From positions 1-64,000 of the forward strand of contig NZ_JMCB01000019.1 of NCBI RefSeq assembly GCF_000737315.1: a DNA stretch of 64,000 bases, in the 5' to 3' direction. A program made the position numbers and the translations under genes. A model generated the notes under the pieces. The model was not told where the DNA came from. It did not search any database and saw nothing but the letters and a program-made list of their open reading frames with translations. The stretch's first letter is position 1; every line of letters starts with the position of its first letter. Of the stretch, positions 6,475-30,511 are shown piece by piece. The DNA comes from Hyalangium minutum (GTDB taxonomy: Bacteria > Myxococcota > Myxococcia > Myxococcales > Myxococcaceae).

Positions 6475-7380
6475 GAGCCTATCTCAGTAGGGAAGAAAAC
6501 GCCCTACCTGATGGGTTAGAAGGTGAAGGAGGAAGTGTGGATTGGGAGTAGCGAAGAGGGATGACGGTTGAAGGATGCCGGAGGAACTGTGGGCGAAGAT
6601 AGAGCCCCTGCTGCCGCCGAGGCCCGAACACCCGCTGGGGTGCCATAACCCGAGAGTGCCGGACAGGGCGGCCATGGAAGCCATCCTGCTGGTGCTGCGC
6701 ACGGGGATGCAGTGGCAGGCGCTGAAAGCCACCGGCCTGTGCCACCCGTCCTCCGCCTACCGGCGGTTCCGCGAGTGGCTTACGGCCGGAGTCTTTCACG
6801 AGTTCTGGCGCCTGGGACTGCTGGCGTACGACGCCCTGGTAGGCATCGACTGGCAGTGGATGAGCGTGGACGGGGCGATGACCAAGGCGCCGCTGGGAGG
6901 AGAGAAGACTGGCCCCAACCCGACCGACCGCGCCAAGAAGGGAACCAAGAGGAGCTTGCTCACAGACAGGCGTGGCGTACCGCTGGGGGTGGTGGCCGCA
7001 GGAGCCAACGTCAACGACCATAAACTGCTGCCCTCTACGTTCGACTCGGTGCCGGTGAAACGTCCCGAGCCTGAACCATGGCCTGCCCAGCACCTGTGCC
7101 TGGATGCGGCCTACGCCTGTACCGAAGTGCGTCGGTGGGGAGACACGTTCCGCCTCCGGCGGCACATCCGCCCGCGTCGTCCCCCCGTCACGCCCCCGAA
7201 GAAGAGCCGCCGGCCGCCGCAAGAAAGCGCGCCGCTGGGTGGTGGAACGCTCCCACTCGTGGATGAACCGCTTCCGAAGAATCCTCATCCGCTGGGAGAA
7301 GCGCGAAGACACCTACCTGGCCATGCTCCACTTGGCCCTGGGCATCATCACTTGGTTCCACTTCCTACCGAAATAGGCAC
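6475..7380 (+). mobile_element. IS5-family insertion sequence, 906 bp (IS427/IS1031-like)
   Basis: Left IR GAGCCTATCTCAGTAGG (6475-6491) and right IR (7364-7380) match at 14/17. TTA duplicated at 6472-6474 and 7381-7383. Confidence 0.9.
6542..7376 (+). pseudogene. IS5-family DDE transposase, probably inactivated
   Basis: ELWAKIEPLLP...ILLVLRTGMQW, SVDGAMTK, LCLDAAY, RWVVERSHSWMNRFRRI motifs. In-frame TGA at 6569-6571 where GWRM would be expected, and a +1 frame change around 7200-7225. Confidence 0.75.
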
Positions 7381-7501
7381 TTAGCGCGCTTCGCTCCGTC
7401 CTCAACGCTTACGTCTCCCCTCGAGATCGCGGTCCTCGCCAAGCACGGCACGGGTCCGTCCTCAATCTCCTCCAGCACGTCGCTGACCGGACGGATACGT
7501 A

Positions 7502-11506: not shown

Positions 11507-14407
11507 TTACGGTTTGGGCGCCTCCTCGGCCACGGGCTCCATCGTCACCCGGAGCCGCAGAGCGCTGAGATCCTTGGGGTACTCCTGGAGCACCAGCGTG
11601 AAGGGCGCCCGCTTCCCAGGAGCCACCACCGTCGCACTCGCATCCAGCTTGGTGCGCAGCTCCGTGAGGGCCTCGGCCGTGTTGACGGCGTGGAGCTCCT
11701 CGGGAGAGGGCGACACTCCCGCCAACCCCTCGGCGGACTTCACCCGCTGGTCGCCGTCGTACAGCGCGGCGGTGACCTTCACCTTCGCCGGCTGCGAGGA
11801 GCGGTTCTCCACCTCGCCGCGGACGTAGAAGATCGGCGTGGTGCCCTTGGTGTCATAGAGGCCGTTGGTGACGTCCCGCATGACGAACTGGCTGGGCGCC
11901 AGCAGCTTGATGATGTGGCTGGGCGAGAGCGCGGCCGGATCCACCCGCCCCTCCTTCATATACACACCGCCCACCGCAGTGAGCGCCAGCAGCAGGCCCG
12001 CGGCGATGGTGAGGTAGGCCACCTGCCCTGTCACGGCCTGGGCCGCCGAGACCTTGCGCCGCTCGGGGATGCCCATGTCCGCGGGCCGGCCCGCAGGGCG
12101 CGCGATGTTCGGAGAGGCCAGGGTCGGCACGGGCCTCGGCGGAGACGCGGGCTCGGCAGCCTGCGATGGCAGATTGATGAGTTCGTGCGAGCCGGCCGAG
12201 TTGCCCTCGATGGGAATCGACTCTGCCCCCATCTCCGCCCCCGCCCCCTCGTGGGCAGGGATGTCGAGCATCTGCCGCCCCGTGTCCGTGGGGCTGAGGG
12301 TCTGATGGCTCGTATCGGTCTGGGTGAGGAAGCCCTCGGAGGGACCGATACGCTGGCGCCCTGTCATCGTGGGCGAGAAGGCAGGCTCCGCTGAGGCGAA
12401 CGGATCGGCCATGCCCCCACCCGGACCAGGGCCCGCGGCGGCGGCAAACGGATCGGCCATGCCTCCACCCGGGCCAGGACCCGCGGCGGCAGCAAACGGA
12501 TCGTCCATCCCGCCTGGAGCCGGCGCCTGAGGAGCAGCGAATGGATCCTCCATGCTCGCGGGCTGAGCCGGAGCAGCGAACGGATCGTCCATTCCGCCCC
12601 CCGGGGGTCCGAACGGATCCGCCATGCCTGCCGCAGGTGCGGGCGAGGACGCGGGCGAATCGAACGGATGATCCATGCCGCCCGGGGGCCCGAACGGATC
12701 CGCCATGCCGCCAGGAGCAGCCGTAGGGCTCTCGGGCGAAGCGAACCCATCGTCCATCATCCCGAAGTCCATGGGCCCCGGAGGCGCGAAGCTCGCGCTC
12801 ATTGGCGCAGGCGCAGGCGCAGCGGGGGCATGGGGCACGGCACCGCCGAAGGACGGACCAAACTCGTCGCCTCCGGGAGGAGCGAAGGGATCGGACGGAG
12901 GCGGGGCGAAGGGATCCGCAGCAGGAGCCGCGGGCGCAACGGGCGCCCCACCCAGCTCCATGCCTTGAGGGCCGAATGGATCTTCGTCCGAGAACGACAG
13001 GGGCGCGGCCTGCGGCGCAGGCACGGGCACGGGAGCAGGCGTGAACGACGGCGCAGGCGCAGGCGCGGCCGCGACCCCGAAGCCGAACTCGTCCGAGGGA
13101 GGCTCGCCCAGTTCGAAGTTCGAGGGACCAAACGGATCGCTCGCCATGGCCGCCGGTGCAGCGGGCGCGGGCGCAAGCGCGGGCGGCGGAGCCATCGCCG
13201 GAGGCGCCATCCGAGACACGGGCGCAGGCGTCGAGACGCTGGCAAGTGCCGGAGATGGAGGCAGCCGATTGGCCCCAGCAGCAGGCCCCGAGGGTGGCCG
13301 GCCCAGGCCTGCGGGCGGAGCCCCCGACACGGGCAGAGGCGTCGGACGGCCCATCGCGACGGGAGGCTTCGGCTGCGCGACGGGCGCGGGAGGCGGCGCC
13401 GGGTCGTCGAACATCGCCATCGGGTCGAACGCGGGCGCGGCGGCGGGCTCCGGCGCCGCACCGCCCAGGTCATCGCCCGACGAGCCGAACGGATCGCCAT
13501 CCGGGGGTCCGAACGGGCTGGCGGGAGCAGGCCTGGCCTGCGCAGGAGGCGGAGCCGACGGCAGCGGCACTGGCGCACTGGGCACGGGGGCCGCCGGAGC
13601 CGGACCACCGGCCGGGCCGGCGAAGAACTCCGAGAACAGGTCGTCCGACGGCGCGGGGGCCGGCGCCGCAGCCGGAGGCAGAGGCTCCAGGGCCTTCACC
13701 CCCGGGCGCGCACTGCTGGCAGGCGCCGAGGCGCCAGGAATCGACATGGCCGGAGGCGCCAATGTCCTGGGCGCGGTCGGCGAGGCCCCACCCAGAGGCC
13801 GGGCTCCGGCCACCCCAGGCTTGACTGGAGCGGGCGTGGGCAGGCCGCGGGCTCCGGCGGGCGGTGCCACACTCGGAATCCCGGGCAGACCTCCACCCGG
13901 CCCCGAGGGCTTGAACGGAACCGCACCGGGTCCCGGAAGACCCTGGACGGGCGGCGGGGAGAACGCCACGGGCGGCAGGGACGGTACCGGAGGCCGCGCC
14001 TCGGGCGGAATGTTGAGCGGGATGGCCCGGGTCGTCTCCTGGAAGAAATCTTCGCCCATGCCCGAATCCGGCGCGTTCCAGGGCGCGGAGGGCTGGGGCA
14101 CGGGAGGCGATGGGGCCTTGGTGGCCGCAATGCCCTCGGCGTACACGCCCGGCTTGGTGGATTGCCCCTTGGGTGGCTCGGGCGCAGTGCCGAACTTCTC
14201 AAAGGGATCGAACCCGCCTTCCGAGGGGGCCGGGCCAGGCGATGGAGACACCGCTGGCAGAGACGTCACCGAGGGGGACGCCGCCGACTCCCGCGTCACG
14301 CGGAAGGTATGGCTACACTTGGTGCAGCGGACCTTGACCCCCTTGTCCGTCACCTTCTCGTCGGGGATCTTGAATCGCGTCTGGCACTGCTCGCACTTGA
14401 CGATCAT
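11507..14407 (-). CDS. Zinc-ribbon (MJ0042-type) protein with long Pro-rich linker, one TM helix and a DUF3426-like C-terminal domain
   Basis: MIVKCEQC..F.IPDEKV..KGVKVRCTKC. About 750-aa disordered linker, TM YLTIAAGLLLALTAVGGVY, C-terminal YVRGEVEN domain. Confidence 0.85.
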   Translation of the reverse strand: MIVKCEQCQTRFKIPDEKVTDKGVKVRCTKCSHTFRVTRESAASPSVTSLPAVSPSPGPAPSEGGFDPFEKFGTAPEPPKGQSTKPGVYAEGIAATKAPSPPVPQPSAPWNAPDSGMGEDFFQETTRAIPLNIPPEARPPVPSLPPVAFSPPPVQGLPGPGAVPFKPSGPGGGLPGIPSVAPPAGARGLPTPAPVKPGVAGARPLGGASPTAPRTLAPPAMSIPGASAPASSARPGVKALEPLPPAAAPAPAPSDDLFSEFFAGPAGGPAPAAPVPSAPVPLPSAPPPAQARPAPASPFGPPDGDPFGSSGDDLGGAAPEPAAAPAFDPMAMFDDPAPPPAPVAQPKPPVAMGRPTPLPVSGAPPAGLGRPPSGPAAGANRLPPSPALASVSTPAPVSRMAPPAMAPPPALAPAPAAPAAMASDPFGPSNFELGEPPSDEFGFGVAAAPAPAPSFTPAPVPVPAPQAAPLSFSDEDPFGPQGMELGGAPVAPAAPAADPFAPPPSDPFAPPGGDEFGPSFGGAVPHAPAAPAPAPMSASFAPPGPMDFGMMDDGFASPESPTAAPGGMADPFGPPGGMDHPFDSPASSPAPAAGMADPFGPPGGGMDDPFAAPAQPASMEDPFAAPQAPAPGGMDDPFAAAAGPGPGGGMADPFAAAAGPGPGGGMADPFASAEPAFSPTMTGRQRIGPSEGFLTQTDTSHQTLSPTDTGRQMLDIPAHEGAGAEMGAESIPIEGNSAGSHELINLPSQAAEPASPPRPVPTLASPNIARPAGRPADMGIPERRKVSAAQAVTGQVAYLTIAAGLLLALTAVGGVYMKEGRVDPAALSPSHIIKLLAPSQFVMRDVTNGLYDTKGTTPIFYVRGEVENRSSQPAKVKVTAALYDGDQRVKSAEGLAGVSPSPEELHAVNTAEALTELRTKLDASATVVAPGKRAPFTLVLQEYPKDLSALRLRVTMEPVAEEAPKP
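12398..12510. repeat. 48-bp in-frame tandem repeat (GPGPGGGMADPFAAAA), about 2.3 copies
   Basis: CGGATCG at 12401, 12449 and 12497. Confidence 0.85.
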
Positions 14408-14448
14408 TCGCTCGGCTCGGGAGTATAGGCCCCAAGCCCGTCCGCCGC

Positions 14449-14474
14449 GAGCAAGCAACCAAGCCAGCTTGCTC
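14449..14474. promoter_or_regulatory. Inverted repeat GAGCAAGC-N10-GCTTGCTC in the divergent promoter region
   Basis: Perfect 8-bp arms at 14449-14456 and 14467-14474. Confidence 0.55.
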
Positions 14475-14557
14475 CCCGATCACCCCTTTGCTACAGGGTT
14501 TCCGCGTTTCCGTGCTTCACGCGCAAGGCTTCCGGACGTGGGCGGAGAGAACCGAAC

Positions 14558-15235
14558 ATGAGCGAAGCAGAGCAGGCAAGCGCTCCAGGTGGCAAGGAGC
14601 CCAAGGTCATCAAGCGGTACACCAACCGGAAGCTCTACGACACCGTGGAGAGCCGGTACGTCACGCTCGATGAGATCGCGGCGATGATCAAGGAGGGCGT
14701 CGAGGTACGGATTGTCGATAACCGTACCAAGGAGGATCTGACCTCCGTCACGCTCGCCCAGATCATCTTCGAGGAGGAGAAGAAGAAGAACCAGATGCCG
14801 CTGGCGGTGCTGCGGGAGATCATCCGCCACCCGGGCGAGTCCATCTCGGGCTTCATCCAGAAGGAAGTCACGCCGCGCGTGGCCTCCATCCGCGAGGAGG
14901 CCGAGCAGCGGCTGGACAAGCTGCTGCGCCGGGATGAGAAGAAGGACGGCGAGCCCACGGCCGAGGGCCACCAGGAGACGGAGCCGCCTGCGGAGCCCAA
15001 GGCCGCCGAGCCCAAGCCCGAGGCCAAGCCAAGCATCAGCCCCTCCGAGCTGCTCAAGGCCAGCCAGCGCGCCTTCGAGGAGTGGCAGCAGAAGATCGAC
15101 GAGCGCGTCAAGCACGCCGTCGACGGCCTCACCGGCAACCTGCCGGCGCTGGGCCGGGACATGCAGTCGCTGACGCAGCGGCTCGAGGAGCTGGAGAAGA
15201 AGCTCGCCGAGCTGGAGCAGCAGAAGAAGTCCTGA
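14558..15235 (+). CDS. PHA synthesis regulator (PhaR-type) DNA-binding domain protein with phasin-like C-terminal coiled coil
   Basis: IKRYTNRKLYDT..SRYVTLDEI..MIKEG..V.IVDN.T.EDLT..TL.QII motif. Confidence 0.85.
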   Translation: MSEAEQASAPGGKEPKVIKRYTNRKLYDTVESRYVTLDEIAAMIKEGVEVRIVDNRTKEDLTSVTLAQIIFEEEKKKNQMPLAVLREIIRHPGESISGFIQKEVTPRVASIREEAEQRLDKLLRRDEKKDGEPTAEGHQETEPPAEPKAAEPKPEAKPSISPSELLKASQRAFEEWQQKIDERVKHAVDGLTGNLPALGRDMQSLTQRLEELEKKLAELEQQKKS

Positions 15236-15241
15236 GCGGCG

Positions 15242-15262
15242 CTCCGGAGCCAGGCTCTGGAG
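15242..15262. terminator. Hairpin between convergent phaR-like and parA genes
   Basis: CTCCGGAG-N5-CTCTGGAG stem with one G-U pair. Confidence 0.45.
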
Positions 15263-15267
15263 TCAGC

Positions 15268-16068
15268 TCACGTCACCCGAGGCGCCCTCCTCTTCTTGGC
15301 GGAGGGCGCGTCGTGGATTTCCTTGGCAATGGCCGCGAGCAGCTCCGCGCCGCGGCTGCTGGGGGCGTACTCCCAGATTGTTTTTCCGTGGCTCTGGGCC
15401 TCGTCGATCTTGACGTTGAAGCCCAGGGGCGTGGAGGCCAGCGCGTCGGGGAAGTAGGCCTTGAGCCGCTCGAGGATGGCGTCGGCCAGGGCCGTCTTGC
15501 GGTAGAGCATGGGCACCACCTTGGTGACGCGCAAATCCGCGCGGCCCTCGGCGTCGCCGACCTTGCGCACCGTCTCCACCATCTCCGCGCAGCCATCCAG
15601 CGCCAGGTACGTGAGCGCCACAGGCACCACCACCTCGGTGGCGGCCACGAGGATGTTGCGCGTGGTGAGCCCCATGGAGGGCGGCGCATCGAAGACGATG
15701 GCTTGGTAGCCGGCGGCCTCGGCCGGGGCGAGCCGGTCGGCCAGCCGCCATGAGCGGCGCTCGTCCTGGGCCACCACCACGGGGAAGTCGCTCATCTCCT
15801 TATAGGAGGGCAGCACGCTCAGGTTGGGGATGGCGCAGGGCTGCACCACGTCCGTCAACTGCACGTTCTCCTCGGTGAGCAGATGGAAGACGTTGCGCGG
15901 CAGGGTGCGCACGTCCACCCCGAGCGACTTGCCCGCATGGCCCTGGGTGTCCAGGTCCACCAGGAGCACCTTGAGCTTGCGCTCCTGGGCGAGCCACGCG
16001 GCGGTGTTCACCGCGAGCGTCGTCTTGCCGGTGCCACCCTTCTCGTTGATGAACGCGATGCGCCGCAT
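15268..16068 (-). CDS. Orphan ParA/Soj-family ATPase
   Basis: NEKGGTGKTT deviant Walker A, LVDLDTQG, FDAPPS, IDEAQSHGKTI. No parB in the window. Confidence 0.92.
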   Translation of the reverse strand: MRRIAFINEKGGTGKTTLAVNTAAWLAQERKLKVLLVDLDTQGHAGKSLGVDVRTLPRNVFHLLTEENVQLTDVVQPCAIPNLSVLPSYKEMSDFPVVVAQDERRSWRLADRLAPAEAAGYQAIVFDAPPSMGLTTRNILVAATEVVVPVALTYLALDGCAEMVETVRKVGDAEGRADLRVTKVVPMLYRKTALADAILERLKAYFPDALASTPLGFNVKIDEAQSHGKTIWEYAPSSRGAELLAAIAKEIHDAPSAKKRRAPRVT

Positions 16069-16368
16069 CTACTTCTTCTTCTCATCCACCAGAGTGTCGA
16101 TCTTGCCCTCAACGGAGGCGAGCAGCTTCTCCAGGTCATCCACCTTGGAGCGCAGCAGCTCCAGGTCAGCCGTGGACGGCAGGTTCATGGCGGACAGGGC
16201 GGTGCGCAGCGCGGAGTCCAGGGTGCCCTTGGCCGCCAGCGAGCGGGACACGAGGCCCTGCACCATCGAGACGAACTTCTCATTGGAGAGCAGCTGCTGG
16301 GCGATCTTGCCGATGCGCTCCTCGCCGGTCTCCACCAGCTTCTTCATCACGGGATTGTCTTTGAGCAT
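16069..16368 (-). CDS. Small coiled-coil protein, PhaE/phasin-like
   Basis: 99 aa. MNLPSTADLELLRSKVDDLE resembles the LNLPTxxD tail of granule-associated proteins. Its stop abuts the parA ATG with no gap. Confidence 0.7.
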   Translation of the reverse strand: MLKDNPVMKKLVETGEERIGKIAQQLLSNEKFVSMVQGLVSRSLAAKGTLDSALRTALSAMNLPSTADLELLRSKVDDLEKLLASVEGKIDTLVDEKKK

Positions 16369-16450
16369 GGTCGTGAGGTCCTCGTAAGGCACGCCGGGAC
16401 AGCGGCAAGTCGAGAAAACGACGCGCACTGTGGAAGGTGGCAACGCGACG

Positions 16451-16491
16451 TGTCAAGCGAGGTTGACAGGGAGCGGAGCCGTCCCTACGGT
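16451..16491 (+). promoter_or_regulatory. sigma70 promoter TTGACA-N17-TACGGT for the ArsA pair, back-to-back with a minus-strand TTGACA
   Basis: TTGACA 16463-16468, TACGGT 16486-16491. TGTCAA at 16451-16456 forms the palindrome TGTCAA-N6-TTGACA. Confidence 0.75.
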
Positions 16492-16504
16492 TCGCCGCTC
16501 CCTT

Positions 16505-17419
16505 ATGCCCGGCCTTCTCGACAAGCGCCTGTGGATCGTCTCCGGCAAGGGTGGCGTGGGCAAGAGCACCCTCTCCGCCGCGCTGGCCCTGCGCTCGGCC
16601 CGTGCTGGCCGGCGGACGCTGGTGTGCGAGGTAAACACCCAGGAGCGCATTACCCGCTTCCTGGAGCGCCCGGCCGCCGGCCCGAATATCACCCTCATCG
16701 AGGAGAACCTGTGGGCGGTGGATGTCCGGCCCCAGGAGGCCATGCGCGAGTACGCGCTCATGGTCCTGCGCTTCGAGACGCTCTACAAGACGGTCTTCGA
16801 GAACCGCCTGGTGCGTTACTTCCTGCGCTTCATCCCCTCGCTGCAGGAGCTGGTGATGCTGGGGAAGATCCTCTACCACCTGCAGGAGAAGCTGCCGGAT
16901 GGGAAGGACCGCTACGAGACGATCGTCCTGGACGCGCCCGCCACGGGGCACGCGATTACCTTCCTCAACGTGCCGCAGGTGCTGCTGCGCACGGTGCCGC
17001 CGGGCCCCCTGGCCCGCGACGCGCTGAAGATGAGGGACCTGCTGGTGGATCCCCAGGTGACGGCGGCCATCCTGGTGGCCCTGCCCGAGGAGCTGCCGGT
17101 GAATGAAGCGCTGGAGCTGCACGCGGCGCTGCGAGATTCGGTGAAGATCCGCACGCACGCGGCGGTGCTCAACAGCACCTTCCCCGAGCGCTTCACCCAG
17201 GCGGACCTGGAGGCGCTCGCGGATTCGCCGGAGCTGCAGCGGGTGGCCAGGTCGCACCACGACCGGGCGATGCTGGCGGAGTTGGCGGCGACGAAGCTGG
17301 AGCGCAACCTCCACGTGCCGGTGTACGAGGTGCCTCGGATCTTCACGTCCACCTTCGGGCGCGCGGCCATCGAGCAGGTAATGGGCCACCTCGAGCGCCT
17401 CGTGATGGGGGCCCCATGA
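16505..17419 (+). CDS. ArsA/Get3-family ATPase, subunit 1
   Basis: SGKGGVGKST, LDAPATGH. Switch I reads EVN instead of DPA. Confidence 0.88.
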   Translation: MPGLLDKRLWIVSGKGGVGKSTLSAALALRSARAGRRTLVCEVNTQERITRFLERPAAGPNITLIEENLWAVDVRPQEAMREYALMVLRFETLYKTVFENRLVRYFLRFIPSLQELVMLGKILYHLQEKLPDGKDRYETIVLDAPATGHAITFLNVPQVLLRTVPPGPLARDALKMRDLLVDPQVTAAILVALPEELPVNEALELHAALRDSVKIRTHAAVLNSTFPERFTQADLEALADSPELQRVARSHHDRAMLAELAATKLERNLHVPVYEVPRIFTSTFGRAAIEQVMGHLERLVMGAP

Positions 17420-18534
17420 GCACGGCCCCTCTCAGCGCGGCGCTCGCGAAGAAGCGCGTCCTGGTGTGCGTCGGCTCGGGCGGCGTGGGGAAGACCACGG
17501 TGGCGGCCACGCTGGCACTGCGCTCGGCGGTGGAGGGCCGCTCCAGCCTGGTGTGCACGATTGACCCGGCCAAGCGGCTGGCCAACTCGCTGGGCCTGTC
17601 GGCGCTGGGCAACACGGAGACGCAGGTCCCCGCCCAGGTGCTCGAGGGGCTGGGGGTGAAGCCCAAGGCCTCGCTGCACGCGATGATGCTGGACATGAAG
17701 CAGACGTGGGACGACCTCATCACCCGGTTCGCCCCTCCCGACCAGCGCGAGCGCATCCTCTCGAACCGCTTCTACCAGGCGCTGTCCACGGCGCTGGCGG
17801 GCAGCCAGGAGTACATCGCGCTGGAGAAGCTCTGGGACCTGCGGCGCCGCAGCCAGTATGAGCTCATCGTCCTGGACACGCCGCCCACGGCGCACGCGCT
17901 GGACTTCCTGGACGCGCCCAACCGCATCCTGGACTTCTTGGACAACGAGGCGGCCAAGTGGCTGCTCACCCCGGCGCTGAAGGCGGGGAAGATCGGCCTG
18001 TCGCTGTTCAACCTGGGCAGCAGCTACATGGCGAAGACGCTCTCGAAGTTCACGGGGACGGAGACGCTCCAGGAGCTGTCCAGCTTCATGCTGGCGATCT
18101 CCTCCATGAACGAGGGCTTCCGCGAGCGCGCCCGAGGCGTGAAGGATCTGCTGAGGGATCCTCAGACGGGCTTCGTGCTCGTCACGGGGCCCCAGGTGGA
18201 GCGGCTCGACGAGGTGACGCACTTCCGCACGCTGCTGAAGCAGAACCAGATGGAGGTGCTGGCGCTGGTGGTGAACCGGGTGCACCCGCAGCCTCCGCCG
18301 TCGCTGTGGGACGATGCGGCCCGGCTGGCCACGGGCCGCCGTGCCAAGGTGGAGGAGACGCTGAAGGAGCTGAAGGTGCTGGCCGACCAGGACTCGGCGG
18401 CCATTACCCAGCTCTCGGCTGCTTGCCCGGACACACCGCTCATCCAGGTGCCCCGGTTCGAGCTGGACGTGCACGACCTCACCGCACTCTGGCGCACCGG
18501 ACGCTACCTCGTGGAAGAAGAGAAGATCCCCTGA
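17416..18534 (+). CDS. ArsA/Get3-family ATPase, subunit 2
   Basis: GSGGVGKTT, TIDPAKRL, LDTPPTAH. ATGA overlap with subunit 1. Confidence 0.88.
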   Translation: MSTAPLSAALAKKRVLVCVGSGGVGKTTVAATLALRSAVEGRSSLVCTIDPAKRLANSLGLSALGNTETQVPAQVLEGLGVKPKASLHAMMLDMKQTWDDLITRFAPPDQRERILSNRFYQALSTALAGSQEYIALEKLWDLRRRSQYELIVLDTPPTAHALDFLDAPNRILDFLDNEAAKWLLTPALKAGKIGLSLFNLGSSYMAKTLSKFTGTETLQELSSFMLAISSMNEGFRERARGVKDLLRDPQTGFVLVTGPQVERLDEVTHFRTLLKQNQMEVLALVVNRVHPQPPPSLWDDAARLATGRRAKVEETLKELKVLADQDSAAITQLSAACPDTPLIQVPRFELDVHDLTALWRTGRYLVEEEKIP

Positions 18535-18704
18535 CTCCTCGCCTGCTCTTGGAGACTTCTGTCGCGTGTCCACCGTTGAACCAGGCAGCCAGGAGAGCCA
18601 GAGGGCCTCAGGCGAATTAAGCTGGGCGCGCACACAAGCGGAACTCTGTGCGGGCCGATGCTGTCCGTGAGGGCGTCGGCTCGGAGAGAGCCTGGACGGA
18701 GAAC

Positions 18705-19868
18705 ATGAGCAAGAGGACGCACATGTCGGGCACATGGCGATGGTGGGTCTTGGTGGGCTCGGTGGGGCTGGTGGGCCTGACGGGCTGCCGGACCACGGGG
18801 ACGGCGATCCGCGAGGACACGAAGCATCCGCGGCAGGAGATCCAGTTCGATCCGGTAGAGGTGACGGCGGATCTGGAGCTGGAAAAGCTGAACGACGAGG
18901 AGCTCTTCGCGGGCGGCACGTCGGCGTTCGCGGCAGGGGACTTCAAGCAGGCGGCGCGGTACTTCGGGCGCCTGGTGGACTTCCACCCGCAGAGCAAGCA
19001 CCGGAACGAGGCGCTCTACAACGCGGGGCTCTCGCACCAGCGGCTCAAGGAGTGGGAGGAGGCTTACCACCGCTTCGCGGAGCTGGCGGACGCAGAGAAG
19101 GGCCAGGGCGACGCGCTGGAGTCGGCCTTCCGGGTGGCGGAGACGCTGTACCACCTGGAGCGCTTCAGTGACGCCGTGAAGATGCTCACCACCCTGGCCC
19201 ATCGGCAGGACATCCCCGTGGGCCGGCGGATGGAGGCGCGGGTGCAGCAGGGCATCTGCGAGCTGGAGCTGGGCCAGAAAGAGCAGTCCGAGAACACGCT
19301 GCGCAAGGCGCTCAGCGACTACGAGTCGCTCTCGGACAAGGACGAGGTGGAGGACTACTTCCCGGCCCAGGCGCACTTCTTCATCGGGGAGGTCTACCGG
19401 CTGCACTACGAGGAGGTGAAGCTGGATCCGGCGAAGGGCACGGACAAGCTGGCCGAGGACCTGAACTACAAGGCCGAGCTGCTGCTGTCGGCGCAGGGGC
19501 ACTACCTGCGGTCGATCAAAGTGGGCAACGGATACTGGGCCACGGCAGCGGGCGCGCAGATCGGCGCGATGTACGAGAACCTGTACGACCACATGGTGAA
19601 CACGCCGGCGCCGCCGGAGCTGGATGCGGAGGAGGCGCAGGTGTACCGGCAGGAGCTGCGCAAGAAGATCCGCGTGCTGCTGACCAAGTCGATCAACATC
19701 TACGAGCGGACGCTGGAGGCGGCCGAGCGCATCGGCTCGCAGAACGCCTTCGTGGATCGGACACGGGAGAGCCTGCGCAAGGTGCGCGAGCTGCTGCTGG
19801 CGGATGCGGACGGCGAGCAGGACGCGGAGCCACCGCCGGAGAAGCCCAAGCCCAAGCCGCACTCCTGA
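18705..19868 (+). CDS. TPR lipoprotein
   Basis: Lipobox LTGC and multiple TPR-like repeats (EALYNAGL, SAFRVAETLY, AQAHFFIGEVY). Confidence 0.8.
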   Translation: MSKRTHMSGTWRWWVLVGSVGLVGLTGCRTTGTAIREDTKHPRQEIQFDPVEVTADLELEKLNDEELFAGGTSAFAAGDFKQAARYFGRLVDFHPQSKHRNEALYNAGLSHQRLKEWEEAYHRFAELADAEKGQGDALESAFRVAETLYHLERFSDAVKMLTTLAHRQDIPVGRRMEARVQQGICELELGQKEQSENTLRKALSDYESLSDKDEVEDYFPAQAHFFIGEVYRLHYEEVKLDPAKGTDKLAEDLNYKAELLLSAQGHYLRSIKVGNGYWATAAGAQIGAMYENLYDHMVNTPAPPELDAEEAQVYRQELRKKIRVLLTKSINIYERTLEAAERIGSQNAFVDRTRESLRKVRELLLADADGEQDAEPPPEKPKPKPHS

Positions 19869-19934: not shown

Positions 19935-21131
19935 ATGGAGCCCATCTTCACCGCTGAGCAGCTCGCCGAGATCAAGGCGTACCACCTGCCGTATTACATC
20001 CGCTCGGGGCTCAATCCGTTCCTGCTGCTGGGGTATCTGGCACTGGTGCTCGGCCCTCTGAATGGGCCTTTTTACCGCTTCGCTCAGCGGCTGGCCGGGT
20101 GGCTCGACAACCACTTGGGATTCCTGCGACGGGCCCCCGTGCTCCGCGTGGTCTTCCAGGTGCTGGACAAGCTCTGGGGCGAGACGGGCTGGGGCACAGC
20201 GCTGCTGTTCGGGCTCTGCGTCGACCTGACCTACAAGCTCGTCTTCCTGCCGGCGGACATCTACTTCGGCTACATCCTCGAGCACCGCTACGGCATGTCG
20301 ACGTACACGCCGCTGACCTTCGCCAAGGATGAGCTCAAGGACGTGCTGGCGGGGGTGGTGCTCGTCTGCTCGCTGGTGCTCGGCGTCTACGGCCTGGCGA
20401 GGCGCGTGCGGCGCTGGTGGCTCGTGCTGGGCGTGCCGATGGCTGTGCTCCTCCTGCTGGTCTCCTCGGTGCTCGACCCGTACCGCAGCCGCGCCTACTT
20501 CGATCAGGAGCCGCTGGAAGCAGGCCCGCTCCGCACCCACATGACCGAGCTGCTGGCGCGTGCGGACATCACCTTCGCGGACATCCTGGTGGAGAAGACG
20601 TCGGTGGCCTCGAAACGGGTGCAGGCCTACTTCGCGGGCCAGGGCCCCACGCGCACCATCGTGCTCAACGACGTGCTGCTTCAGCAGTTCTCTGAGGGAG
20701 AGATCCTCGCGGCAGTGGCGCATGAGGCAGGCCACGTGAACGAGGCCCAGTGGCCCAACCGGATCGCCTCGGCGCTCGCGCTGGTGGCCTTCCTCTTCGT
20801 CATCGACTGGCTCTTGCGGCGAGCGGCGGCGCGGGGTTGGTTCGGCGCAATGCGCTTCGCGGACATCCGCACCCTGCCGCTGATCTCGCTGCTGTACTTC
20901 TCGGTGATGCTGACGGCGGCGCCGGTGTCCGCCGCGTTCTCCCGGGAGCGGGAGCGCGAGGCCGACCGTTATGCCCTGCGCCTCACGAAAGACCCTGCCA
21001 CGTTCCGCCAGATGCTGGTGAAGGCCGCGCGGGTGAACAAGATGGACCCCGAGCCTCCGCGTTGGATCGTCATCAAGGGCCTGACCCACCCGCCCGTCGG
21101 AGAGCGCATCTCCGATATCTCCGTGCCCTGA
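19935..21131 (+). CDS. M48-family (Ste24/HtpX-like) membrane metallopeptidase
   Basis: HEAGH, SREREREADRYA, THPPVGERI and several TM helices. Confidence 0.88.
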   Translation: MEPIFTAEQLAEIKAYHLPYYIRSGLNPFLLLGYLALVLGPLNGPFYRFAQRLAGWLDNHLGFLRRAPVLRVVFQVLDKLWGETGWGTALLFGLCVDLTYKLVFLPADIYFGYILEHRYGMSTYTPLTFAKDELKDVLAGVVLVCSLVLGVYGLARRVRRWWLVLGVPMAVLLLLVSSVLDPYRSRAYFDQEPLEAGPLRTHMTELLARADITFADILVEKTSVASKRVQAYFAGQGPTRTIVLNDVLLQQFSEGEILAAVAHEAGHVNEAQWPNRIASALALVAFLFVIDWLLRRAAARGWFGAMRFADIRTLPLISLLYFSVMLTAAPVSAAFSREREREADRYALRLTKDPATFRQMLVKAARVNKMDPEPPRWIVIKGLTHPPVGERISDISVP

Positions 21132-21787: not shown

Positions 21788-22954
21788 TCAGGCCCGGCCC
21801 AGGTTCTGGATGGCCTGCTTGGCCATCTCGTTGAACTTTGAAGAGATGTTGCTCATGAGGTCGAACATCTGTTTGCGCTTCTCCATGAGCTTCTGGAGAC
21901 GCAGGTTCAGCTGTTCCATGGTCGTCTCGAGCTTGGCCGCGCGGGTGCGGCCCGACTCGTCGGTGCCGAGCTTGGCGCGCTCGTCACGGGCGTTGGACAT
22001 CTCCTTCATCACGTCGAGGATCTCGTCATCAGTGTCCTGGGTGATGAGCGTGAGGAGCGCCTGGAGCTTCTCCTCCATGCTCATGTTCGGGCTGTTGATG
22101 ATGTCGCTCACGCTGCTGGAGGGCCGACCACAGCCACCAGGCTTCGGAGCCGGAGCGCTCTCCACGGGGGGTGAGGGCTGACCGGTCGACGGCGGCTTGG
22201 TCTCCACGGGGGTGCCCGGAGTGCCCGGATTGGAGGGAGTGCCCACCGGAGGCGGCTTGGCCGGGCATGACGGGGTGCCCGGAGTGCCCGGGTTGGAGGG
22301 AGTGCCCACCGGAGGCGGCTTGGCCGGGCATGACGTGGAGGGCTGGCGCACGCCGTACTGGGCGATGTCGTCGTTCACCTTCTTCAGCGCGCGCTGCACA
22401 TCGAGCTGGCTGATGGTGCCATCGGCTGAGCCACCCTTGCCGGCGGTATCGAGCATGTTGCGGTACTCGGGGTGCTCGAGCAGGAAACGGGCAGCGCTGC
22501 GCAGCTCGGGGGAGAGGTTCGGGTTCTCGGCGGCCTTCTGGAGCGTGCTCAGGTCGAACTTCGAGTTCTGCTTGCTGTTGAGCGTGTCGAGCATGCCGAA
22601 GTTGGCGGCGATGGTGCGGAGCGCCTCCTGGTACTGAAGGACGCTGGGCTCCAGGTAGCCCGTGCTGGCGGCGGAGGCCGCCTGCTGCTTGGCAGGCGCA
22701 TAACCCTCCTGGGCCTTGGCGGCGTCCTGGGCGGGGTAGAACTCGGTCTGGGCGGCGGGATTCTTCGTGAGCTCCGAGACGACGCCGAGGGCGCCGCTGG
22801 CAGCCATCATGACGTTACCCGTGAGGGCACCGGCGGCGGCCTTGATGGAGTTGGTCAACAGCGGGGGAAGACCGAGCTTATCGCCCGCGAAGTCGACGAT
22901 GGTGGCCATGGGACCGGCCAACGTGTTCACAGCATTTTTGATGAAGTCGAGCAT
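21788..22954 (-). CDS. Putative type III-secreted translocator/filament-like protein
   Basis: Amphipathic N-terminus. PELRSAARFLLEHP...LDTAGKGGSADGTIS segment (NolX/HrpF-like). Pro-rich linker. C-terminal LQKLMEKRKQMFDLMSNISSKFNEMAKQAIQNL (EspA/Bsp22-like). Resemblance judged by eye. Confidence 0.55.
   Translation of the reverse strand: MLDFIKNAVNTLAGPMATIVDFAGDKLGLPPLLTNSIKAAAGALTGNVMMAASGALGVVSELTKNPAAQTEFYPAQDAAKAQEGYAPAKQQAASAASTGYLEPSVLQYQEALRTIAANFGMLDTLNSKQNSKFDLSTLQKAAENPNLSPELRSAARFLLEHPEYRNMLDTAGKGGSADGTISQLDVQRALKKVNDDIAQYGVRQPSTSCPAKPPPVGTPSNPGTPGTPSCPAKPPPVGTPSNPGTPGTPVETKPPSTGQPSPPVESAPAPKPGGCGRPSSSVSDIINSPNMSMEEKLQALLTLITQDTDDEILDVMKEMSNARDERAKLGTDESGRTRAAKLETTMEQLNLRLQKLMEKRKQMFDLMSNISSKFNEMAKQAIQNLGRA
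22209..22334. repeat. 63-bp in-frame tandem duplication (SCPAKPPPVGTPSNPGTPGTP x2)
   Basis: Copies at 22209-22271 and 22272-22334 differ at one base. Confidence 0.92.
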
Positions 22955-23159
22955 GTTGCCTCCCGCGCGGAGGGTTGAAGGTTGAGAGGCGAAGCGCCGC
23001 GCGATGGGAGGGCCCACTTGCAGGGAGAATGCCGAGGCCTTCGGATGCCCCCCACCCAACGAAATCAGGCGGTTAGGTTCGGCACCGAACGAGCCCTCCG
23101 TCTCCGGCCGCGGACGGTGGGGGTCCACGGCGGGGGACTGCGATTAGAGTCCCCGGCCC

Positions 23160-25307: not shown

Positions 25308-25807
25308 GGAGGCGCCGGAGGATACGCAGGCAGTGCTCAAAACCAAGCAACCCTCGCCCCCTTGCCCACCCTGCGGCCCCTCTGGGACAGCTGTCCTACC
25401 TCGCCCCCTAACACTCCAAGTGGACGGGTTGCGCGTCACCGCGACCCGCCGTTATGTCCATCCTCATGAGACATCACCCCACAGTGGGTCTCCGGAACGC
25501 CGGAAAGTCCGGCCCTGGACGTTCACTCCTGGGGGGATGACCCGCTGGACCCTACCCCCCGGGGCTGGGGTCCTTATAATCAAGCTGCCTATTCACCCCG
25601 TGGAGGGTGTGCCTACCCGTGGCACCCCCGACACGTGCTGACCACGCGGTCCCACTCCGCGGCGGGGTCCCGAATTGGCGCCAGGAGCCTTTTTCGCCTG
25701 GGACCCGCTGGCGGGGTGATCGGAATGGCGATCACCACCCCCAGGTTCAAAATTCTGGCCCCCCGTGTGCGCGACTCCCGCGCCCTCGGGAGCCCCGAGG
25801 GAGAGAC

Positions 25808-27871
<2,064 letters not shown>

Positions 27872-27873
27872 CC

Positions 27874-28986
27874 GTGTCGCTGAAGATCCACCAGGACCAC
27901 TCCCGCTTCAAAGCGATCGTCCGAGGGAAGATCAAAGCCAACCTGCGCAAGTACGTGCAGAAGGGCGAGATGCTCGGCAAGAAGGGCAAGGATGCCATCT
28001 CCATCCCCATCCCCTTCATCGACATCCCCCGCTTCAAGTACGGCCATAAGGAGCAGGGCGGCGTAGGGCAGGGAGACGGTGAGGTGGGTCAGTCGCTCGG
28101 CCCCGGGCAGCCTCAGCCTGGGGACGGGCACGGCCACGCCGGCCAGGGCGAGGGCGACCATGCCCTCGAGGTCGACGTCACCCTCGACGAGCTGGCGCAG
28201 ATCCTGGGCGAGGAGCTGCAGCTGCCCAACATCGAGCGCCGGCACAACGAGAAGATCGTCACCCAGAAGATCAAATACACCGGCATCAACACCACCGGCC
28301 CCGAGTCGCTCCGCCACTTCAAGCGCACCTTCAAGCAGGCGCTGAAGCGGCAGATCGCCACCGGCACGTATGACCCGAAGAAGCCGGTCATCATCCCCAC
28401 GCGCGAGGACCGGCGCTACCGCAGCTACAAGCTCCAGGACCTGCCGGAGACCAACGCCGTCATCATCTACATGATGGACGTGTCCGGCTCGATGGGCGAC
28501 GAGCAGAAGGAGATCGTCCGCATCGAGAGCTTCTGGCTCGATACGTGGCTGCGCCACCAGTACAAGGGCCTCGAGTCGCGCTACATCATCCACGACGCCG
28601 TGGCCCGCGAGGTGGACCGGGAGACCTTCTTCCACACCCGCGAGTCCGGCGGCACGATGATCTCCAGCGCCTACAAGCTCTGCCGCGACATCATCGCGGC
28701 CGACTACCCGAAGAGCGCGTGGAACATCTACCCGTTCCACTTCTCGGACGGTGACAACTGGAGCGCGGACGACACGCGCCAGTGCATCGAGATGCTCAAG
28801 AACGATGTGCTGCCCAACGTGAACCAGTTCGCCTACGGGCAAGTCGAGAGCCCCTACGGCAGCGGCCAGTTCATCAAGGATCTGCGCGAGGCCGTGGGCG
28901 ACCAGTCCAACGTGGCCCTCAGCGAGATCGCCGACAAGGACGCCATCTACAACTCCATCAAGGACTTCCTCGGAAAGGGCCGCTGA
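27874..28986 (+). CDS. yeaH: YeaH/YhbH-family (DUF444) vWA protein
   Basis: [14 protein letters not shown] motif, [20 protein letters not shown] start 2 nt after prkA. Confidence 0.9.
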
Positions 28987-29017
28987 AGCCCCGCGCCCCC
29001 ACGGAGCACCCGCCCCG

Positions 29018-30511
29018 ATGCCCAAGAGCCTCACACCCCGCCTGGCCGCTCTGAACGAGGAGATCCTCGGGTACGCCCGCGAGTTCGGGCTCGACTTCTT
29101 CGAGACCATCTTCGAAGTCGTCACCTACGACGAGATGAACATGGTGGCCTCCTACGGAGGCTTCCCCAACCGCTACCCGCACTGGCGCTGGGGCATGGAG
29201 TACGAGCAGCTCTCCAAGGGCTACGAGTACGGCCTCTCGAAGATCTACGAGCTCGTCATCAACAACGACCCCTGCTACGCGTACCTCCTGGAGAGCAACG
29301 CGGACGTGGACCAGAAGCTCGTGATGGCCCACGTGTACGGGCACTGCGACTTCTTCAAGAACAACTTCTCCTTCCGCCACACCAACCGGCGGATGATCGA
29401 CGAGATGGCCAACCACGCCACCCGCGTGCGCCGGTGGATCGACAAGATCGGCGTGGAGAAGGTGGAAGACTTCATCGACCGGACGCTGAGCCTCGAGAAC
29501 CTCATCGACCAGCACGCCCCGCACATCCGCCGCAACCCGGATCCCCGGCGCGCCGAGGACGAGGCCAAGGCCAACGAGCGCGTCGAGGGCTTCAAGGTCA
29601 ACCGCGAGTACATGCGCGGCTTCATCAACCCGTCCGAGTTCCTCGAGTCCCAGCGCAAGAAGGTCGAGGACGAAAAGCAGCGCTCCAAGAAGTTCCCCGA
29701 GCGCCCCCAGCGTGACGTCCTCTACTTCCTCCTGGAGAACGCCCCCCTGGAGCCGTGGGAGGCTGACATCCTCTCCATCCTCCGCGACGAGGCCTACTAC
29801 TTCGCCCCCCAGGGCCAGACGAAGATCATGAACGAGGGGTGGGCCAGCTACTGGCACTCCACCATCATGACGCGCCGCGCCCTGAAGGATGATGAGATCA
29901 TCGACTACGCGGACCGCCACTCCGGCACCATGGGGACCCGCCCAGGTACGCTCAATCCCTACAAGCTAGGCATCGAGCTGTGGCGGGACATCGAGGACCG
30001 CTGGAACAAGGGCCGCTTCGGCAAGGAGTGGGACGAGTGCGATGACCTTCGGGCCCGAGGCTCGTGGGACAAGAAGCTGGGCGCGGGCCGGGAGAAGATC
30101 TTCGAGGTCCGCAAGCACTACAACGACATCACCTTCATCGACACGTTCCTCACCGCCGAGTTCGCCATCGAGCAGAAGCTGTTCGTCTACGGCTTCAACG
30201 ACAAGCGCAACTCCTGGGAGATCCTCGACCGGGAGTTCCGAAAGGTGAAGGCCAAGTTGCTGCAGGGCCTGACGAACTTCGGCCAGCCCATCATCGAGGT
30301 GGTGGACGGCAACTTCGAGAACCGCAGTGAACTGCTCCTCGCCCACAAGCACGATGGACAGGATCTCAAGGGCGACTACGCTCGCGAGACACTTAGAAAC
30401 TTACAGTCTCTCTGGCGGAGGCCTGTCAACATCGTTACGAGGTACGATGGCAAAGGCGTCATGCTACGCTACGACGGCCAGAACCACTCGGAGAAGAAAG
30501 TCGACCTCTAG
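29018..30511 (+). CDS. spoVR: SpoVR/YcgB-family protein
   Basis: [45 protein letters not shown]. Confidence 0.93.

Follow-up and report, generated by a model that had tools for sequence, protein, structure and literature searches.

The 64,000-nucleotide stretch of Hyalangium minutum DNA analysed here (the window) carries, side by side, genes for a PhaR-like DNA-binding protein, an orphan ParA, a 99-residue phasin-like protein and two Get3/ArsA-fold ATPases. Do these proteins work together and, if so, on what? The original prediction was that five adjacent genes form a system for loading and positioning storage granules or lipid bodies, in a combination of which no description was known; we likewise found none.

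Layout of the gene cluster

All five genes exist where they had been predicted, with coordinates that were nearly exact. Together with their neighbours, they are laid out as follows.

11507 to 14458, minus strand: gene for a zinc-ribbon/Pro-rich membrane protein, 983 aa (Zn_ribbon_4, TIGR02098), divergent from the PhaR-like gene
14558 to 15235, plus strand: PhaR-like gene, 225 aa (PF07879 PHB_acc_N), convergent with parA
15268 to 16068, minus strand: ParA gene (orphan Soj/ParA-type ATPase), 266 aa (AAA_31), directly 3' of the small gene
16069 to 16368, minus strand: small three-helix phasin-like gene, 99 aa (PF05597-related)
16369 to 16504, no strand: divergent intergenic region separating the small gene from bagA; two sigma-70-like -35 boxes, back to back
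16505 to 17419, plus strand: gene for a BagA-like Get3/ArsA-fold ATPase, 304 aa (PF02374, NF053622, PDB 6bs3_A)
17416 to 18534, plus strand: gene for a BagB-like Get3/ArsA-fold ATPase, 372 aa (NF053621, PDB 6bs3_B)
18648 to 19868, plus strand: TPR lipoprotein gene (TPR families)
19935 to 21131, plus strand: gene for a Ste24/HtpX-type M48 membrane protease (Peptidase_M48_N and M48)

The predicted span of 14449-18534 holds at its end, but its start does not, because the conserved ATG of the PhaR-like gene lies 109 nt downstream of 14449. The limit of five genes was also too narrow: the conserved block is larger and includes the zinc-ribbon/Pro-rich membrane protein, the TPR lipoprotein and the M48 protease. 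The small gene and the bagA-bagB operon are transcribed divergently. As predicted, the TAG stop codon of the small gene abuts the ATG of parA, with a spacer of 0 nt, and bagA and bagB overlap by 4 nt (ATGA). The intergenic region holds a -35 box for the small gene (TGTCAA at 16451-16456, which reads TTGACA on the minus strand) and another for bagA (TTGACA at 16463-16468), and both boxes, with -10-like blocks downstream of them, are kept across 104 aligned orthologous intergenic regions. Because the distance between the two boxes is variable, they point to two promoters and not to one palindromic operator; a generic promoter scanner gave no match in this region. Consistent with the predicted lack of arsenic genes and of a PHA synthase, Pfam scans of ∼40 ORFs across the window returned no ArsB, ArsC, ArsR or ArsD, no PHA synthase and no ParB, and the ORFs scanned included no WS/DGAT or lipase.

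Identity of the encoded proteins

The two ATPases had been described as an overlapping ArsA/Get3 pair, of which the overlap and the fold stand, but not the generic class: judged by sequence, the two are homologous to BagA/BagB of mycobacteria (Rv3679/Rv3680), closer to these than to generic Get3/ArsA proteins. The BagA-like protein matches PF02374 (1.3e-30) and PDB 6bs3_A (Rv3679; 2.4e-19), and the BagB-like protein matches PDB 6bs3_B (Rv3680) at 2.9e-68 over residues 11-359. As in M. tuberculosis (6BS3), the genes are adjacent and overlapping, the BagB alignment runs over the full length, and the P-loops show the same asymmetry (GKGGVGKS with the signature lysine in the BagA-like protein and GSGGVGKT without it in the BagB-like protein, where Rv3680 has GAGGVGKT at the same place). 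Unlike the mycobacterial proteins, those encoded here score under the NCBIfam equivalog cut-offs (NF053622 BagA, 126 bits, cut-off 400; NF053621 BagB, 320 bits over the full length, cut-off 521); because these models were trained on M. tuberculosis proteins, such scores indicate a homologous family and not equivalog status. The bagAB genes read as a predicted operon encoding a heterodimer-type Get3/ArsA-fold ATPase.

Could the pair instead be an arsenite-efflux ArsA split into two genes? The PF02374 (ArsA_ATPase) matches would fit, but we give this next to no chance, since the two proteins reach 53-61 bits with the equivalog model of the arsenite-pump ATPase (TIGR04291), whose cut-off is 650, BagB/Rv3680 is matched best, and arsB, arsC, arsD and arsR are absent from the window. 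Both proteins have too few cysteines: the BagA-like protein has one, the BagB-like protein has no metalloid-binding cysteine cluster, and there is no triad. Models, cysteines and neighbours all bear out the earlier claim that the pair lacks an arsenic signature. A Get3/TRC40 tail-anchor factor is not indicated either: the two proteins score 92 and 97 bits against TIGR00345 (cut-off 135), and both lack CXXC, the zinc motif of the dimer interface.

By sequence comparison, the 99-residue protein comes from a family that is related to the Pseudomonas putida phasins PhaF and PhaI (PF05597), in agreement with the original prediction. The protein in the window scores 22.4-23.2 bits against PF05597 (gathering cut-off 28.8), below the Pfam and NCBIfam phasin cut-offs, whereas 46 of 58 diverse family members match this model at E <=0.01 (best E, 9.4e-8). 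The family numbers 241 clusters at 50% identity, and a basic histone-like (PhaF-style) tail is found in 43/119 clusters (50% identity; complete domain only). AF2 predicts helices at residues 6-27, 30-60 and 66-98 (mean pLDDT 66.6), and the mean hydrophobic moment is 0.31, compared with 0.22 ± 0.04 in shuffles. On predicted structure, the family shows the traits of phasins, being all-helical and amphipathic, with a zipper at the C-terminus and, in some members, a histone-like tail. Like PhaF/PhaI, it has tail-less (PhaI-like) and histone-tailed (PhaF-like) forms and a C-terminal leucine-zipper region, and the tailed PhaF architecture tethers PHA granules to the nucleoid (PMC13052382). Unlike PhaF/PhaI, which neighbour phaC/phaZ/phaD, the small gene has no pha synthase/depolymerase cluster nearby and adjoins bagAB, the gene for the PhaR_N protein and parA.

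The PhaR-like protein had been predicted to combine a PhaR-type DNA-binding domain with a phasin-like tail. The domain is evident (PF07879 PHB_acc_N, E 4.9e-27, profile positions 1-60 of 61) and leads into a long helix, which a disordered linker rich in E/K/P joins to a helical hairpin/zipper at the C-terminus with the motif NLPxxxxD...LExxL. AF2 gives pLDDT >90 at residues 16-80 and in the last helices; a search for a solved structure or fold match found none. The zipper appears weakly phasin-like: against the C-terminal half of the small-protein family HMM, residues 179-222 score 15-17 bits, and matches to this HMM at 12-21 bits occur in 60 of 82 PhaR-like orthologues. From PhaR itself the protein differs in that the C-terminal PHB_acc region (PF05233) gave no Pfam match, its place being taken by the disordered linker and zipper, and in that TIGR01848 PhaR scores 88.6 bits, under its cut-off of 109.45. 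In common with PhaR/PhaP, there is a PHB_acc_N domain and a regulator gene beside a phasin-type gene, an analogy which suggests that the PhaR-like protein and the small protein may follow PhaR/PhaP titration logic.

The ParA, called a ParA without parB in the original prediction, fits that description (AAA_31, 1.3e-39), with no cognate ParB among the scanned ORFs and a score of 84.5 bits for NF041546 (cut-off 180). Among solved structures, it is closest to the chromosomal ParA of M. xanthus (8RAY, 1.2e-36) and to Thermus Soj; McdA is matched at only E 1.3e-6. It carries the deviant Walker A motif KGGTGKT, together with LLVDLD and IVFDAPPS (Walker A' and Walker B). In the alignment, the positions for non-specific DNA binding are basic: Arg stands at the Soj R189-equivalent position and Lys at the MxParA R238/Soj R218-equivalent position, where the numbering follows what we take to be the Soj sequence. 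In gene layout, a small partner gene is coupled to and co-conserved with an orphan parA, as in an McdAB-like pair, and an orphan ParA-type ATPase gene beside a small helical or coiled-coil partner also recalls PomXYZ and ParC/ParP. The differences from McdA/McdB and the other orphan ParA pairs are that the partner here is encoded 5' of parA and is a member of a phasin-like family and that the ParA is optional; McdB has no sequence relation to the small protein. No ParA-specific motif was found in the small protein, whose N-terminus is equally conserved in a ParA-less clade.

Conservation in Myxococcota and linkage elsewhere

We compared 121 species-level Myxococcota loci, taking counts over those with enough flank to be evaluable. 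The small gene divergently adjoins bagA in 107/112 loci, an adjacency still seen where identity of the small protein has fallen to 28%; bagB is adjacent in 81/85, and the PhaR-like gene lies <=2.5 kb away in 71/85. The synteny survey therefore upheld co-conservation of the core, but not of ParA as a part of it. Although ParA lies directly 3' of the small gene in 94/113 evaluable loci (median gap, 10 nt; <=30 nt in 82/98), and five loci retain the small gene and parA without bagAB, it is missing from every deep branch and has been lost on at least three occasions with the rest of the cluster retained (loci L060, L044/L087 and L083). ParA is thus a lineage-restricted accessory: in the Myxococcaceae/Archangiaceae/Vulgatibacter branch, a Soj-like ParA joined the transcription unit of the small gene. 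Because it is absent from the deep branches and was lost repeatedly, positioning cannot be the core function of the cluster. Between the small gene and bagA, the deep-branching loci carry a gene for an alpha/beta hydrolase that resembles lipases/esterases, is membrane-anchored and has hydrophobic helices at its N-terminus.

It is very unlikely, in our estimate, that these genes are neighbours only through ancestral gene order within one phylum and work independently. All 120 genome matches fall within Myxococcota, and synteny with the cluster extends to the TPR, M48 and zinc-ribbon genes on its flanks (the TPR gene follows bagB in 53/59 evaluable loci), so that part of the adjacency may be inherited order. 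However, the neighbourhood has been rearranged repeatedly, by gain and losses of ParA and by insertion of an Lhr helicase, of glycoside hydrolases and of the alpha/beta hydrolase, and throughout, the small gene, the hub of the neighbourhood, has kept bagAB or parA beside it. In addition, stop codons abut or overlap the next start codon, and linkage of PhaR_N to bagAB recurs elsewhere in a different gene order. An arrangement that recurs in >100 species-level genomes is not a chance juxtaposition, and the cluster, which is conserved, is very probably a functional module built around the phasin-like protein.

The linkage in other lineages takes two forms. PhaR_N directly precedes bagA in PhaR_N-bagA-bagB operons with overlapping genes, found both in MAGs labelled 'Deltaproteobacteria' and in metagenome loci with a GC content of 52-55%, and the PhaR_N gene lies just 3' of bagB in two more loci; the PhaR_N-bagAB linkage is thus independent of gene order. 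A metagenome locus of 44% GC has the order hydrolase-bagA-bagB. Among distant bagAB loci with sufficient flank, 26/30 are without either partner gene, and phasin-like, PhaR-like or ParA neighbours are not known from the mycobacterial bagAB operon. In mycobacteria, a connection of BagAB has been reported with glycerol and nitric-oxide stress rather than with granules. BagA/BagB of M. tuberculosis are reportedly the subject of Hu et al. 2019 (J Bacteriol) and Whitaker et al. 2020 (J Bacteriol).

The cluster could also be a regulator-plus-effector stress module that involves no storage body. In it, bagAB and the small gene would simply have the PhaR-like protein as their transcription factor, BagAB would guard against metabolic or nitrosative stress as in mycobacteria, the small coiled-coil protein would serve as cofactor or anti-regulator, and ParA, where present, would position a protein assembly or nucleoid-associated complex rather than a granule. 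The place of PhaR_N directly before bagA elsewhere, classic for a local regulator, the glycerol and nitric-oxide toxicity phenotypes of mycobacterial BagAB, the lack of PHA or TAG synthesis genes in the window and the evolutionary dispensability of ParA would all suit it. We nonetheless consider it doubtful, though a serious contender, because it leaves unexplained the phasin- and PhaR-type identity of the partners, the PhaF-like DNA-binding tails in a third of the small-protein family and the lipase-like hydrolase of deep-branching operons.

A role in membrane-protein biogenesis or quality control seems distinctly unlikely. Here a Get3-like BagAB would bring single-anchor proteins to the inner membrane, helped by the small protein in the part of a holdase or receptor-like partner, while the M48 protease and TPR lipoprotein would act on the same clients. 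The Get3/ArsA fold is consistent with such a role, as are the N-terminal hydrophobic helices of the hydrolase in the deep-locus bagAB operon, the TPR and M48 genes after bagB in most loci and the conserved zinc-ribbon membrane protein next door. Also in its favour, TatA lies directly 5' within the operon in other lineages and ∼3.7 kb off in the Myxococcus locus L001. Against it, no TatA lies near the cluster in this window, the TRC40/GET3 model stays under its cut-off, CXXC is lacking, a tail-anchored client is not evident, and the DNA-binding PhaR domain and ParA would be left without a role.

A candidate module for a storage or lipid body

The reading that we tentatively favour, at somewhat less than an even chance, is that the module is built around a PhaF/PhaI-type amphipathic small protein and serves a storage or lipid body together with the PhaR-like protein, BagAB and, in one branch, ParA; loading and positioning of such bodies is what we would infer as its function. 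The small protein would coat or mark a hydrophobic intracellular body, most plausibly lipid bodies in these TAG-storing bacteria, or else PHA. BagAB would use ATP to hold hydrophobic or amphipathic proteins and deliver them to its surface. The PhaR-like protein would act as local regulator and sensor, titrated between DNA and the hydrophobic surface or the small protein as with PhaR/PhaP, possibly via the zipper common to both proteins. Where present, nucleoid-bound ParA-ATP would hold its cargo through the small protein as adaptor and spread this cargo along the chromosome. Myxococcus makes TAG lipid bodies (PMC4048283), and the lipid droplets of Rhodococcus jostii bind DNA via the small droplet protein MLDS and the regulator MLDSR (PMC5504291). 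MLDS/MLDSR is alike in concept, by analogy only: a small coat protein and a DNA-binding regulator next to it connect a neutral-lipid body with the chromosome.

This storage-body reading is favoured by co-conservation of the core down to 28% small-protein identity, by a PhaR_N-bagAB linkage that does not depend on gene order, by the tight coupling of the small gene to parA, a pair that survives without bagAB, and by the PF05597 matches and histone-like tails of the small-protein family. The ParA retains the motifs of an ATPase and a basic residue at both DNA-binding positions, and the lipase-like hydrolase of the deep-branching loci and the hydrolase-bagA-bagB order at 44% GC point the same way. 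It is weakened by the lack of a PHA synthase, WS/DGAT or lipase in the window, by the sub-cut-off phasin scores of the window protein, by an optional ParA, by the lack of a ParA-specific motif in the small protein, and by mycobacterial BagAB being tied to glycerol and nitric-oxide stress, with most distant bagAB loci partnerless. Bolder, and in our view unlikely, is the proposal that the phasin-like protein is the adaptor of a first ParA-driven, nucleoid-based system for positioning carbon-storage bodies (lipid bodies or PHA granules), with a PhaR-type sensor and with Get3-like BagAB loading amphipathic or hydrophobic proteins onto them. If true, it would give BagAB-type ATPases a cellular function, and the phylum-wide gene linkage makes the job of these ATPases testable.

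The zinc-ribbon protein may also be part of the module. It has an N-terminal MJ0042-type zinc ribbon (Zn_ribbon_4, 1e-14; TIGR02098, 3e-11), a long Pro/Ala/Gly-rich stretch with degenerate DPF repeats, one transmembrane helix and a C-terminal domain. Where the flank suffices, a zinc-ribbon match nearly always adjoins the PhaR-like gene, in the deepest loci too, and in the metagenome locus L155 one adjoins bagA.

Layout and co-conservation of the cluster

The window has a GC content of ~68% and a myxobacterial character, and its small protein is most closely related to proteins from Hyalangium. All five genes of the cluster claimed in the original prediction are present, as shown by their coordinates and Pfam matches. 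The predicted position of the cluster held, but its left edge at 14449 did not, because the conserved start of the PhaR-like gene lies 109 nt further on.

Genes of the cluster
14558-15235, + strand, PhaR-like protein, 225 aa (PHB_acc_N, 4.9e-27)
15268-16068, - strand, ParA, 266 aa (AAA_31, 1.3e-39)
16069-16368, - strand, small protein, 99 aa; the parA ATG abuts its TAG stop
16505-17419, + strand, BagA-like protein, 304 aa (PF02374, 1.3e-30)
17416-18534, + strand, BagB-like protein, 372 aa; 4-nt overlap with bagA

These genes make up three transcription units: the small gene and parA share one, which converges on the PhaR-like gene and diverges from bagA-bagB. The M. xanthus locus has the same layout. 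As had been claimed, arsenic (ars) genes, a PHA synthase and a ParB were all missing from the Pfam matches of ~40 ORFs scanned across the window.

To survey synteny, at least 120 species-representative loci were collected with a degenerate DNA pattern based on the small protein, and the window proteins were placed on the listed loci by tblastn. Every one of the at least 120 matches listed came from Myxococcota. Because the loci are fixed 8-kb blocks with partial flanks, the counts describe a sample and the denominators are evaluable loci. Among these listed loci, bagA was divergent from and adjacent to the small gene in 107 of 112, bagB was present in 81 of 85, the PhaR-like gene lay within 2.5 kb of the small gene in 71 of 85, and the TPR gene followed bagB in 53 of 59. 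The small gene stayed linked to bagAB even where small-protein identity falls to 28%. Thus, the predicted co-conservation across Myxococcota was borne out for the small gene, bagAB and the PhaR-like gene but not for ParA, which is confined to one branch.

Further genes were found inserted in deep-branching loci. In one deep clade, an Lhr helicase separates the small gene from the PhaR-like gene. In eight deep-branching listed loci, a membrane-anchored alpha/beta hydrolase, co-directional with bagAB, stands between the small gene and bagA. This hydrolase is of the lipase/esterase type, with an HSxGG nucleophile elbow, N-terminal hydrophobic helices and matches to PGAP1, Lipase_2 and DUF676; NCBIfam gave weak generic matches only.

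Hydrolase directly upstream of bagA, by locus (deep-branching loci and one metagenome contig of 44% GC)
L095, 4489-5316
L018, 5474-6301
L012, 5791-6681
Further loci: L120, L072, L031, L015, L049, L149

The ParA is of the Soj type, its best solved relative being the M. xanthus chromosomal ParA (8RAY). Its ATPase motifs are intact, and a basic residue is kept at both positions that serve non-specific DNA binding, namely an Arg where Soj, by our numbering, has R189 and a Lys where MxParA has R238. It lies directly downstream of the small gene in 94 of 113 evaluable listed loci, with a median gap of 10 nt among the listed loci and a 1-nt overlap in 18 of them. ParA was found in none of the 15 evaluable listed loci whose small protein is <50% identical to that of the window, and it has been lost, with the other cluster genes staying in place, from L060, from L044 and L087, and from L083, in which glycoside hydrolases stand where ParA would be. 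Further, five loci (L042, L050, L052, L054 and L110) keep the small gene and parA with the upstream bagAB absent. Taken together with the tight gap, these patterns therefore indicate that the small protein is the hub and ParA a later add-on in one branch.

A ParA-specific motif in the small protein was considered and rejected, because the N-terminal MLKDNPVMKK also occurs in a ParA-less clade. In L123, from an uncultured delta proteobacterium, the reading frame of the small gene runs on into a frame-shifted parA region and gives a 382-aa ORF, which reflects parA decay or else an error of assembly.

The BagAB-type ATPase pair

The mycobacterial BagAB is a described Get3-like ATPase linked to glycerol and nitric-oxide tolerance; to our knowledge, these phenotypes come with no known client or mechanism. 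The whole length of the BagB-like protein aligned with Rv3680 (6bs3_B, 2.9e-68; NF053621, 320 bits), and the BagA-like protein aligned with Rv3679 at 2.4e-19. In both pairs the signature lysine of the deviant Walker A motif occurs in the first protein only (P-loops GKGGVGKS in the BagA-like protein, GSGGVGKT in the BagB-like protein and GAGGVGKT in Rv3680). On the ArsA equivalog models, whose cut-off is 650 bits, the pair reached 53-61 bits, and the metalloid-binding cysteines are absent from the sequences of the pair, which rules against the ArsA identity that had been considered. Judged by sequence, the two proteins are relatives of the BagAB family and not ArsA. A role of the cluster in arsenite resistance is vanishingly improbable, given the same scores, the missing cysteines and the lack of ars genes among the window ORFs.

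In a second survey of metagenomes, with BagB as the anchor, loci with a Myxococcota-like BagB (46-66% identity) carried the same cluster. Among more distant bagAB loci, 30 had sufficient flank, and in 26 of these neither partner gene was found, in agreement with the actinobacterial bagAB operon, which is not known to have such partners. A PHB_acc_N protein was encoded near bagAB in four of the distant loci: its gene overlaps the start of bagA in L200 and L181 (52-55% GC) and lies just downstream of bagB in L169 and L155. Of four 'Deltaproteobacteria bacterium' MAG contigs with relatives of the L181 protein, three have the gene order TatA-(150-aa unknown)-PhaR_N-bagA-bagB.

TatA-(150-aa unknown)-PhaR_N-BagA-BagB operons, each followed by a convergent PilZ gene
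L207, 4325-7486
L208, 4795-7559
L210, 4264-7445

The 150-aa protein was rejected as phasin-like (hhalign probability ~1%). In the Myxococcus locus L001, TatA lies ~3.7 kb from the PhaR-like gene, and one metagenome locus of 44% GC has the order hydrolase-bagA-bagB.

PHB_acc_N is a rare domain, and its recurrence beside bagAB in varied arrangements therefore argues for a functional link over inherited gene order alone; that the cluster reflects nothing but inherited synteny is very unlikely. A Get3-like module for membrane-protein targeting and quality control, including the M48 protease, the TPR lipoprotein and TatA, also appears unlikely; in the window, TatA is not near the cluster.

The phasin-like and PhaR-like proteins and a candidate storage-body role

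The small protein is predicted to form three helices (AF2 model, mean pLDDT 66.6) of moderate amphipathicity, and its PF05597 score falls slightly short of the cut-off. The family divides into 241 clusters at 50% identity, and 46 of 58 diverse members match PF05597. Among 119 representative clusters in which the domain is complete, 43 have a K/A/P-rich, histone-like tail; these members have the PhaF architecture, whereas the window protein is without the tail and has the PhaI-like form. In two Vulgatibacter loci (L017 and L090), a small protein with a long AKKP-rich, PhaF-like tail is followed by ParA, and a fused DNA-binding tail and ParA are therefore not mutually exclusive. Distant actinobacterial relatives from Solirubrobacterales do not adjoin bagAB, and the linkage therefore stops short of that subfamily. 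In two Solirubrobacteraceae loci (L124, 9447-10298, and L125, 8393-9244), such a relative lies ~2 kb from a DAGAT/acyltransferase gene, which may be a coincidence or a hint of a link to neutral lipids.

In the PhaR-like protein, AF2 modelled the PHB_acc_N domain with confidence; after it, a disordered linker leads to a helical hairpin at the C-terminus. Of the phasin-like tail proposed in the original prediction, what stood is a weak match of this hairpin to the zipper half of the small-protein HMM. Precomputed PF05597 matches also exist for many PhaR_N proteins of a sister lineage. The protein falls below the PhaR equivalog cut-off and is without PF05233; a sequence search of solved structures found no relative, and the best E in a fold search with the AF2 model was only 0.17.

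Between the small gene and bagA, a palindromic operator (TGTCAA-N6-TTGACA) was rejected because its boxes drift apart in 104 aligned intergenic regions, and on this basis we read them as two putative divergent -35 boxes. The predicted divergent promoters of the small gene and bagA are conserved in the same alignment; a generic promoter/terminator scan gave nothing useful.

The established gene content, family relationships, tight operon structure, conserved divergent promoters and co-conservation describe a set of genes that probably constitute one functional module. We tentatively propose, as a possible role, that the small protein would coat or mark a hydrophobic body and act as the adaptor through which nucleoid-bound ParA spreads it, while BagAB would chaperone hydrophobic or amphipathic proteins onto it. 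The PhaR-like protein may regulate the two divergent operons and, by analogy with PhaR/PhaP, either a hydrophobic surface or the small protein could titrate it by way of a shared zipper. The weakest step in this model is the identity of the body; lipid bodies are the likeliest candidate because Myxococcus stores TAG (PMC4048283) and no PHA genes were seen in the window. A stress or regulatory module in which no storage body is involved is rather unlikely.

Each part of the cluster is in, or borders, a known family (BagAB, Soj/ParA, PF05597 phasins and PHB_acc_N). In the literature searched, we found no description of the combination, no M. xanthus locus tags for it and no lipid-body proteome. 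What sets the cluster apart is a putative adaptor of the phasin type paired with ParA, together with partners of PhaR and phasin type for a BagAB operon. M. xanthus is a genetically tractable model organism, and the cluster occurs in its relatives. A 2025 review on how bacterial organelles are positioned names PhaM, PhaF, PhaH or AlgP as the tethers of PHB and polyphosphate granules; it states that no ParA-type spacing system or energy requirement is known for these granules and poses the possibility of one as a question (PMC13052382). A phasin-type gene in one unit with an orphan ParA, in ~100 myxobacterial species, provides a concrete candidate for granule spacing. Likewise, the linkage of BagAB to PhaR_N and phasin-like proteins, independent of gene order, provides a first hypothesis on BagAB targets. 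Should the storage-body reading fail, a conserved BagAB partner set would still stand, consisting of a DNA-binding PhaR_N zipper protein and a small helical protein.

Genes flanking the cluster

The following genes were observed on either side of the cluster.

6575-7384, + strand, IS4/IS5-family transposase ORF (DUF4096 and DDE_Tnp_1), ~7 kb left of the cluster
11507-14458, - strand, 983-aa protein with an MJ0042 zinc ribbon resembling that of GltJ
21788-23128, - strand, 446-aa protein with no Pfam match
25607-30511, + strand, three-gene set of PrkA (AAA_PrkA and PrkA), DUF444 (YeaH-like) and SpoVR, ~7 kb from the cluster

In the zinc-ribbon protein, a stretch of hundreds of residues is rich in Pro/Ala/Gly and includes degenerate 'GGMADPF' repeats; a single TM helix and a C-terminal domain are also present. 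Its gene is divergent from the PhaR-like gene in nearly every listed locus, and in the metagenome locus L155 a zinc-ribbon gene adjoins bagA. The 446-aa protein carries a tandem duplication, 'PSCPAKPPPVGTPSNPGTPGTP', and a coiled-coil-like C-terminal region. PrkA-DUF444-SpoVR is a conserved triad tied to stress and sporulation.
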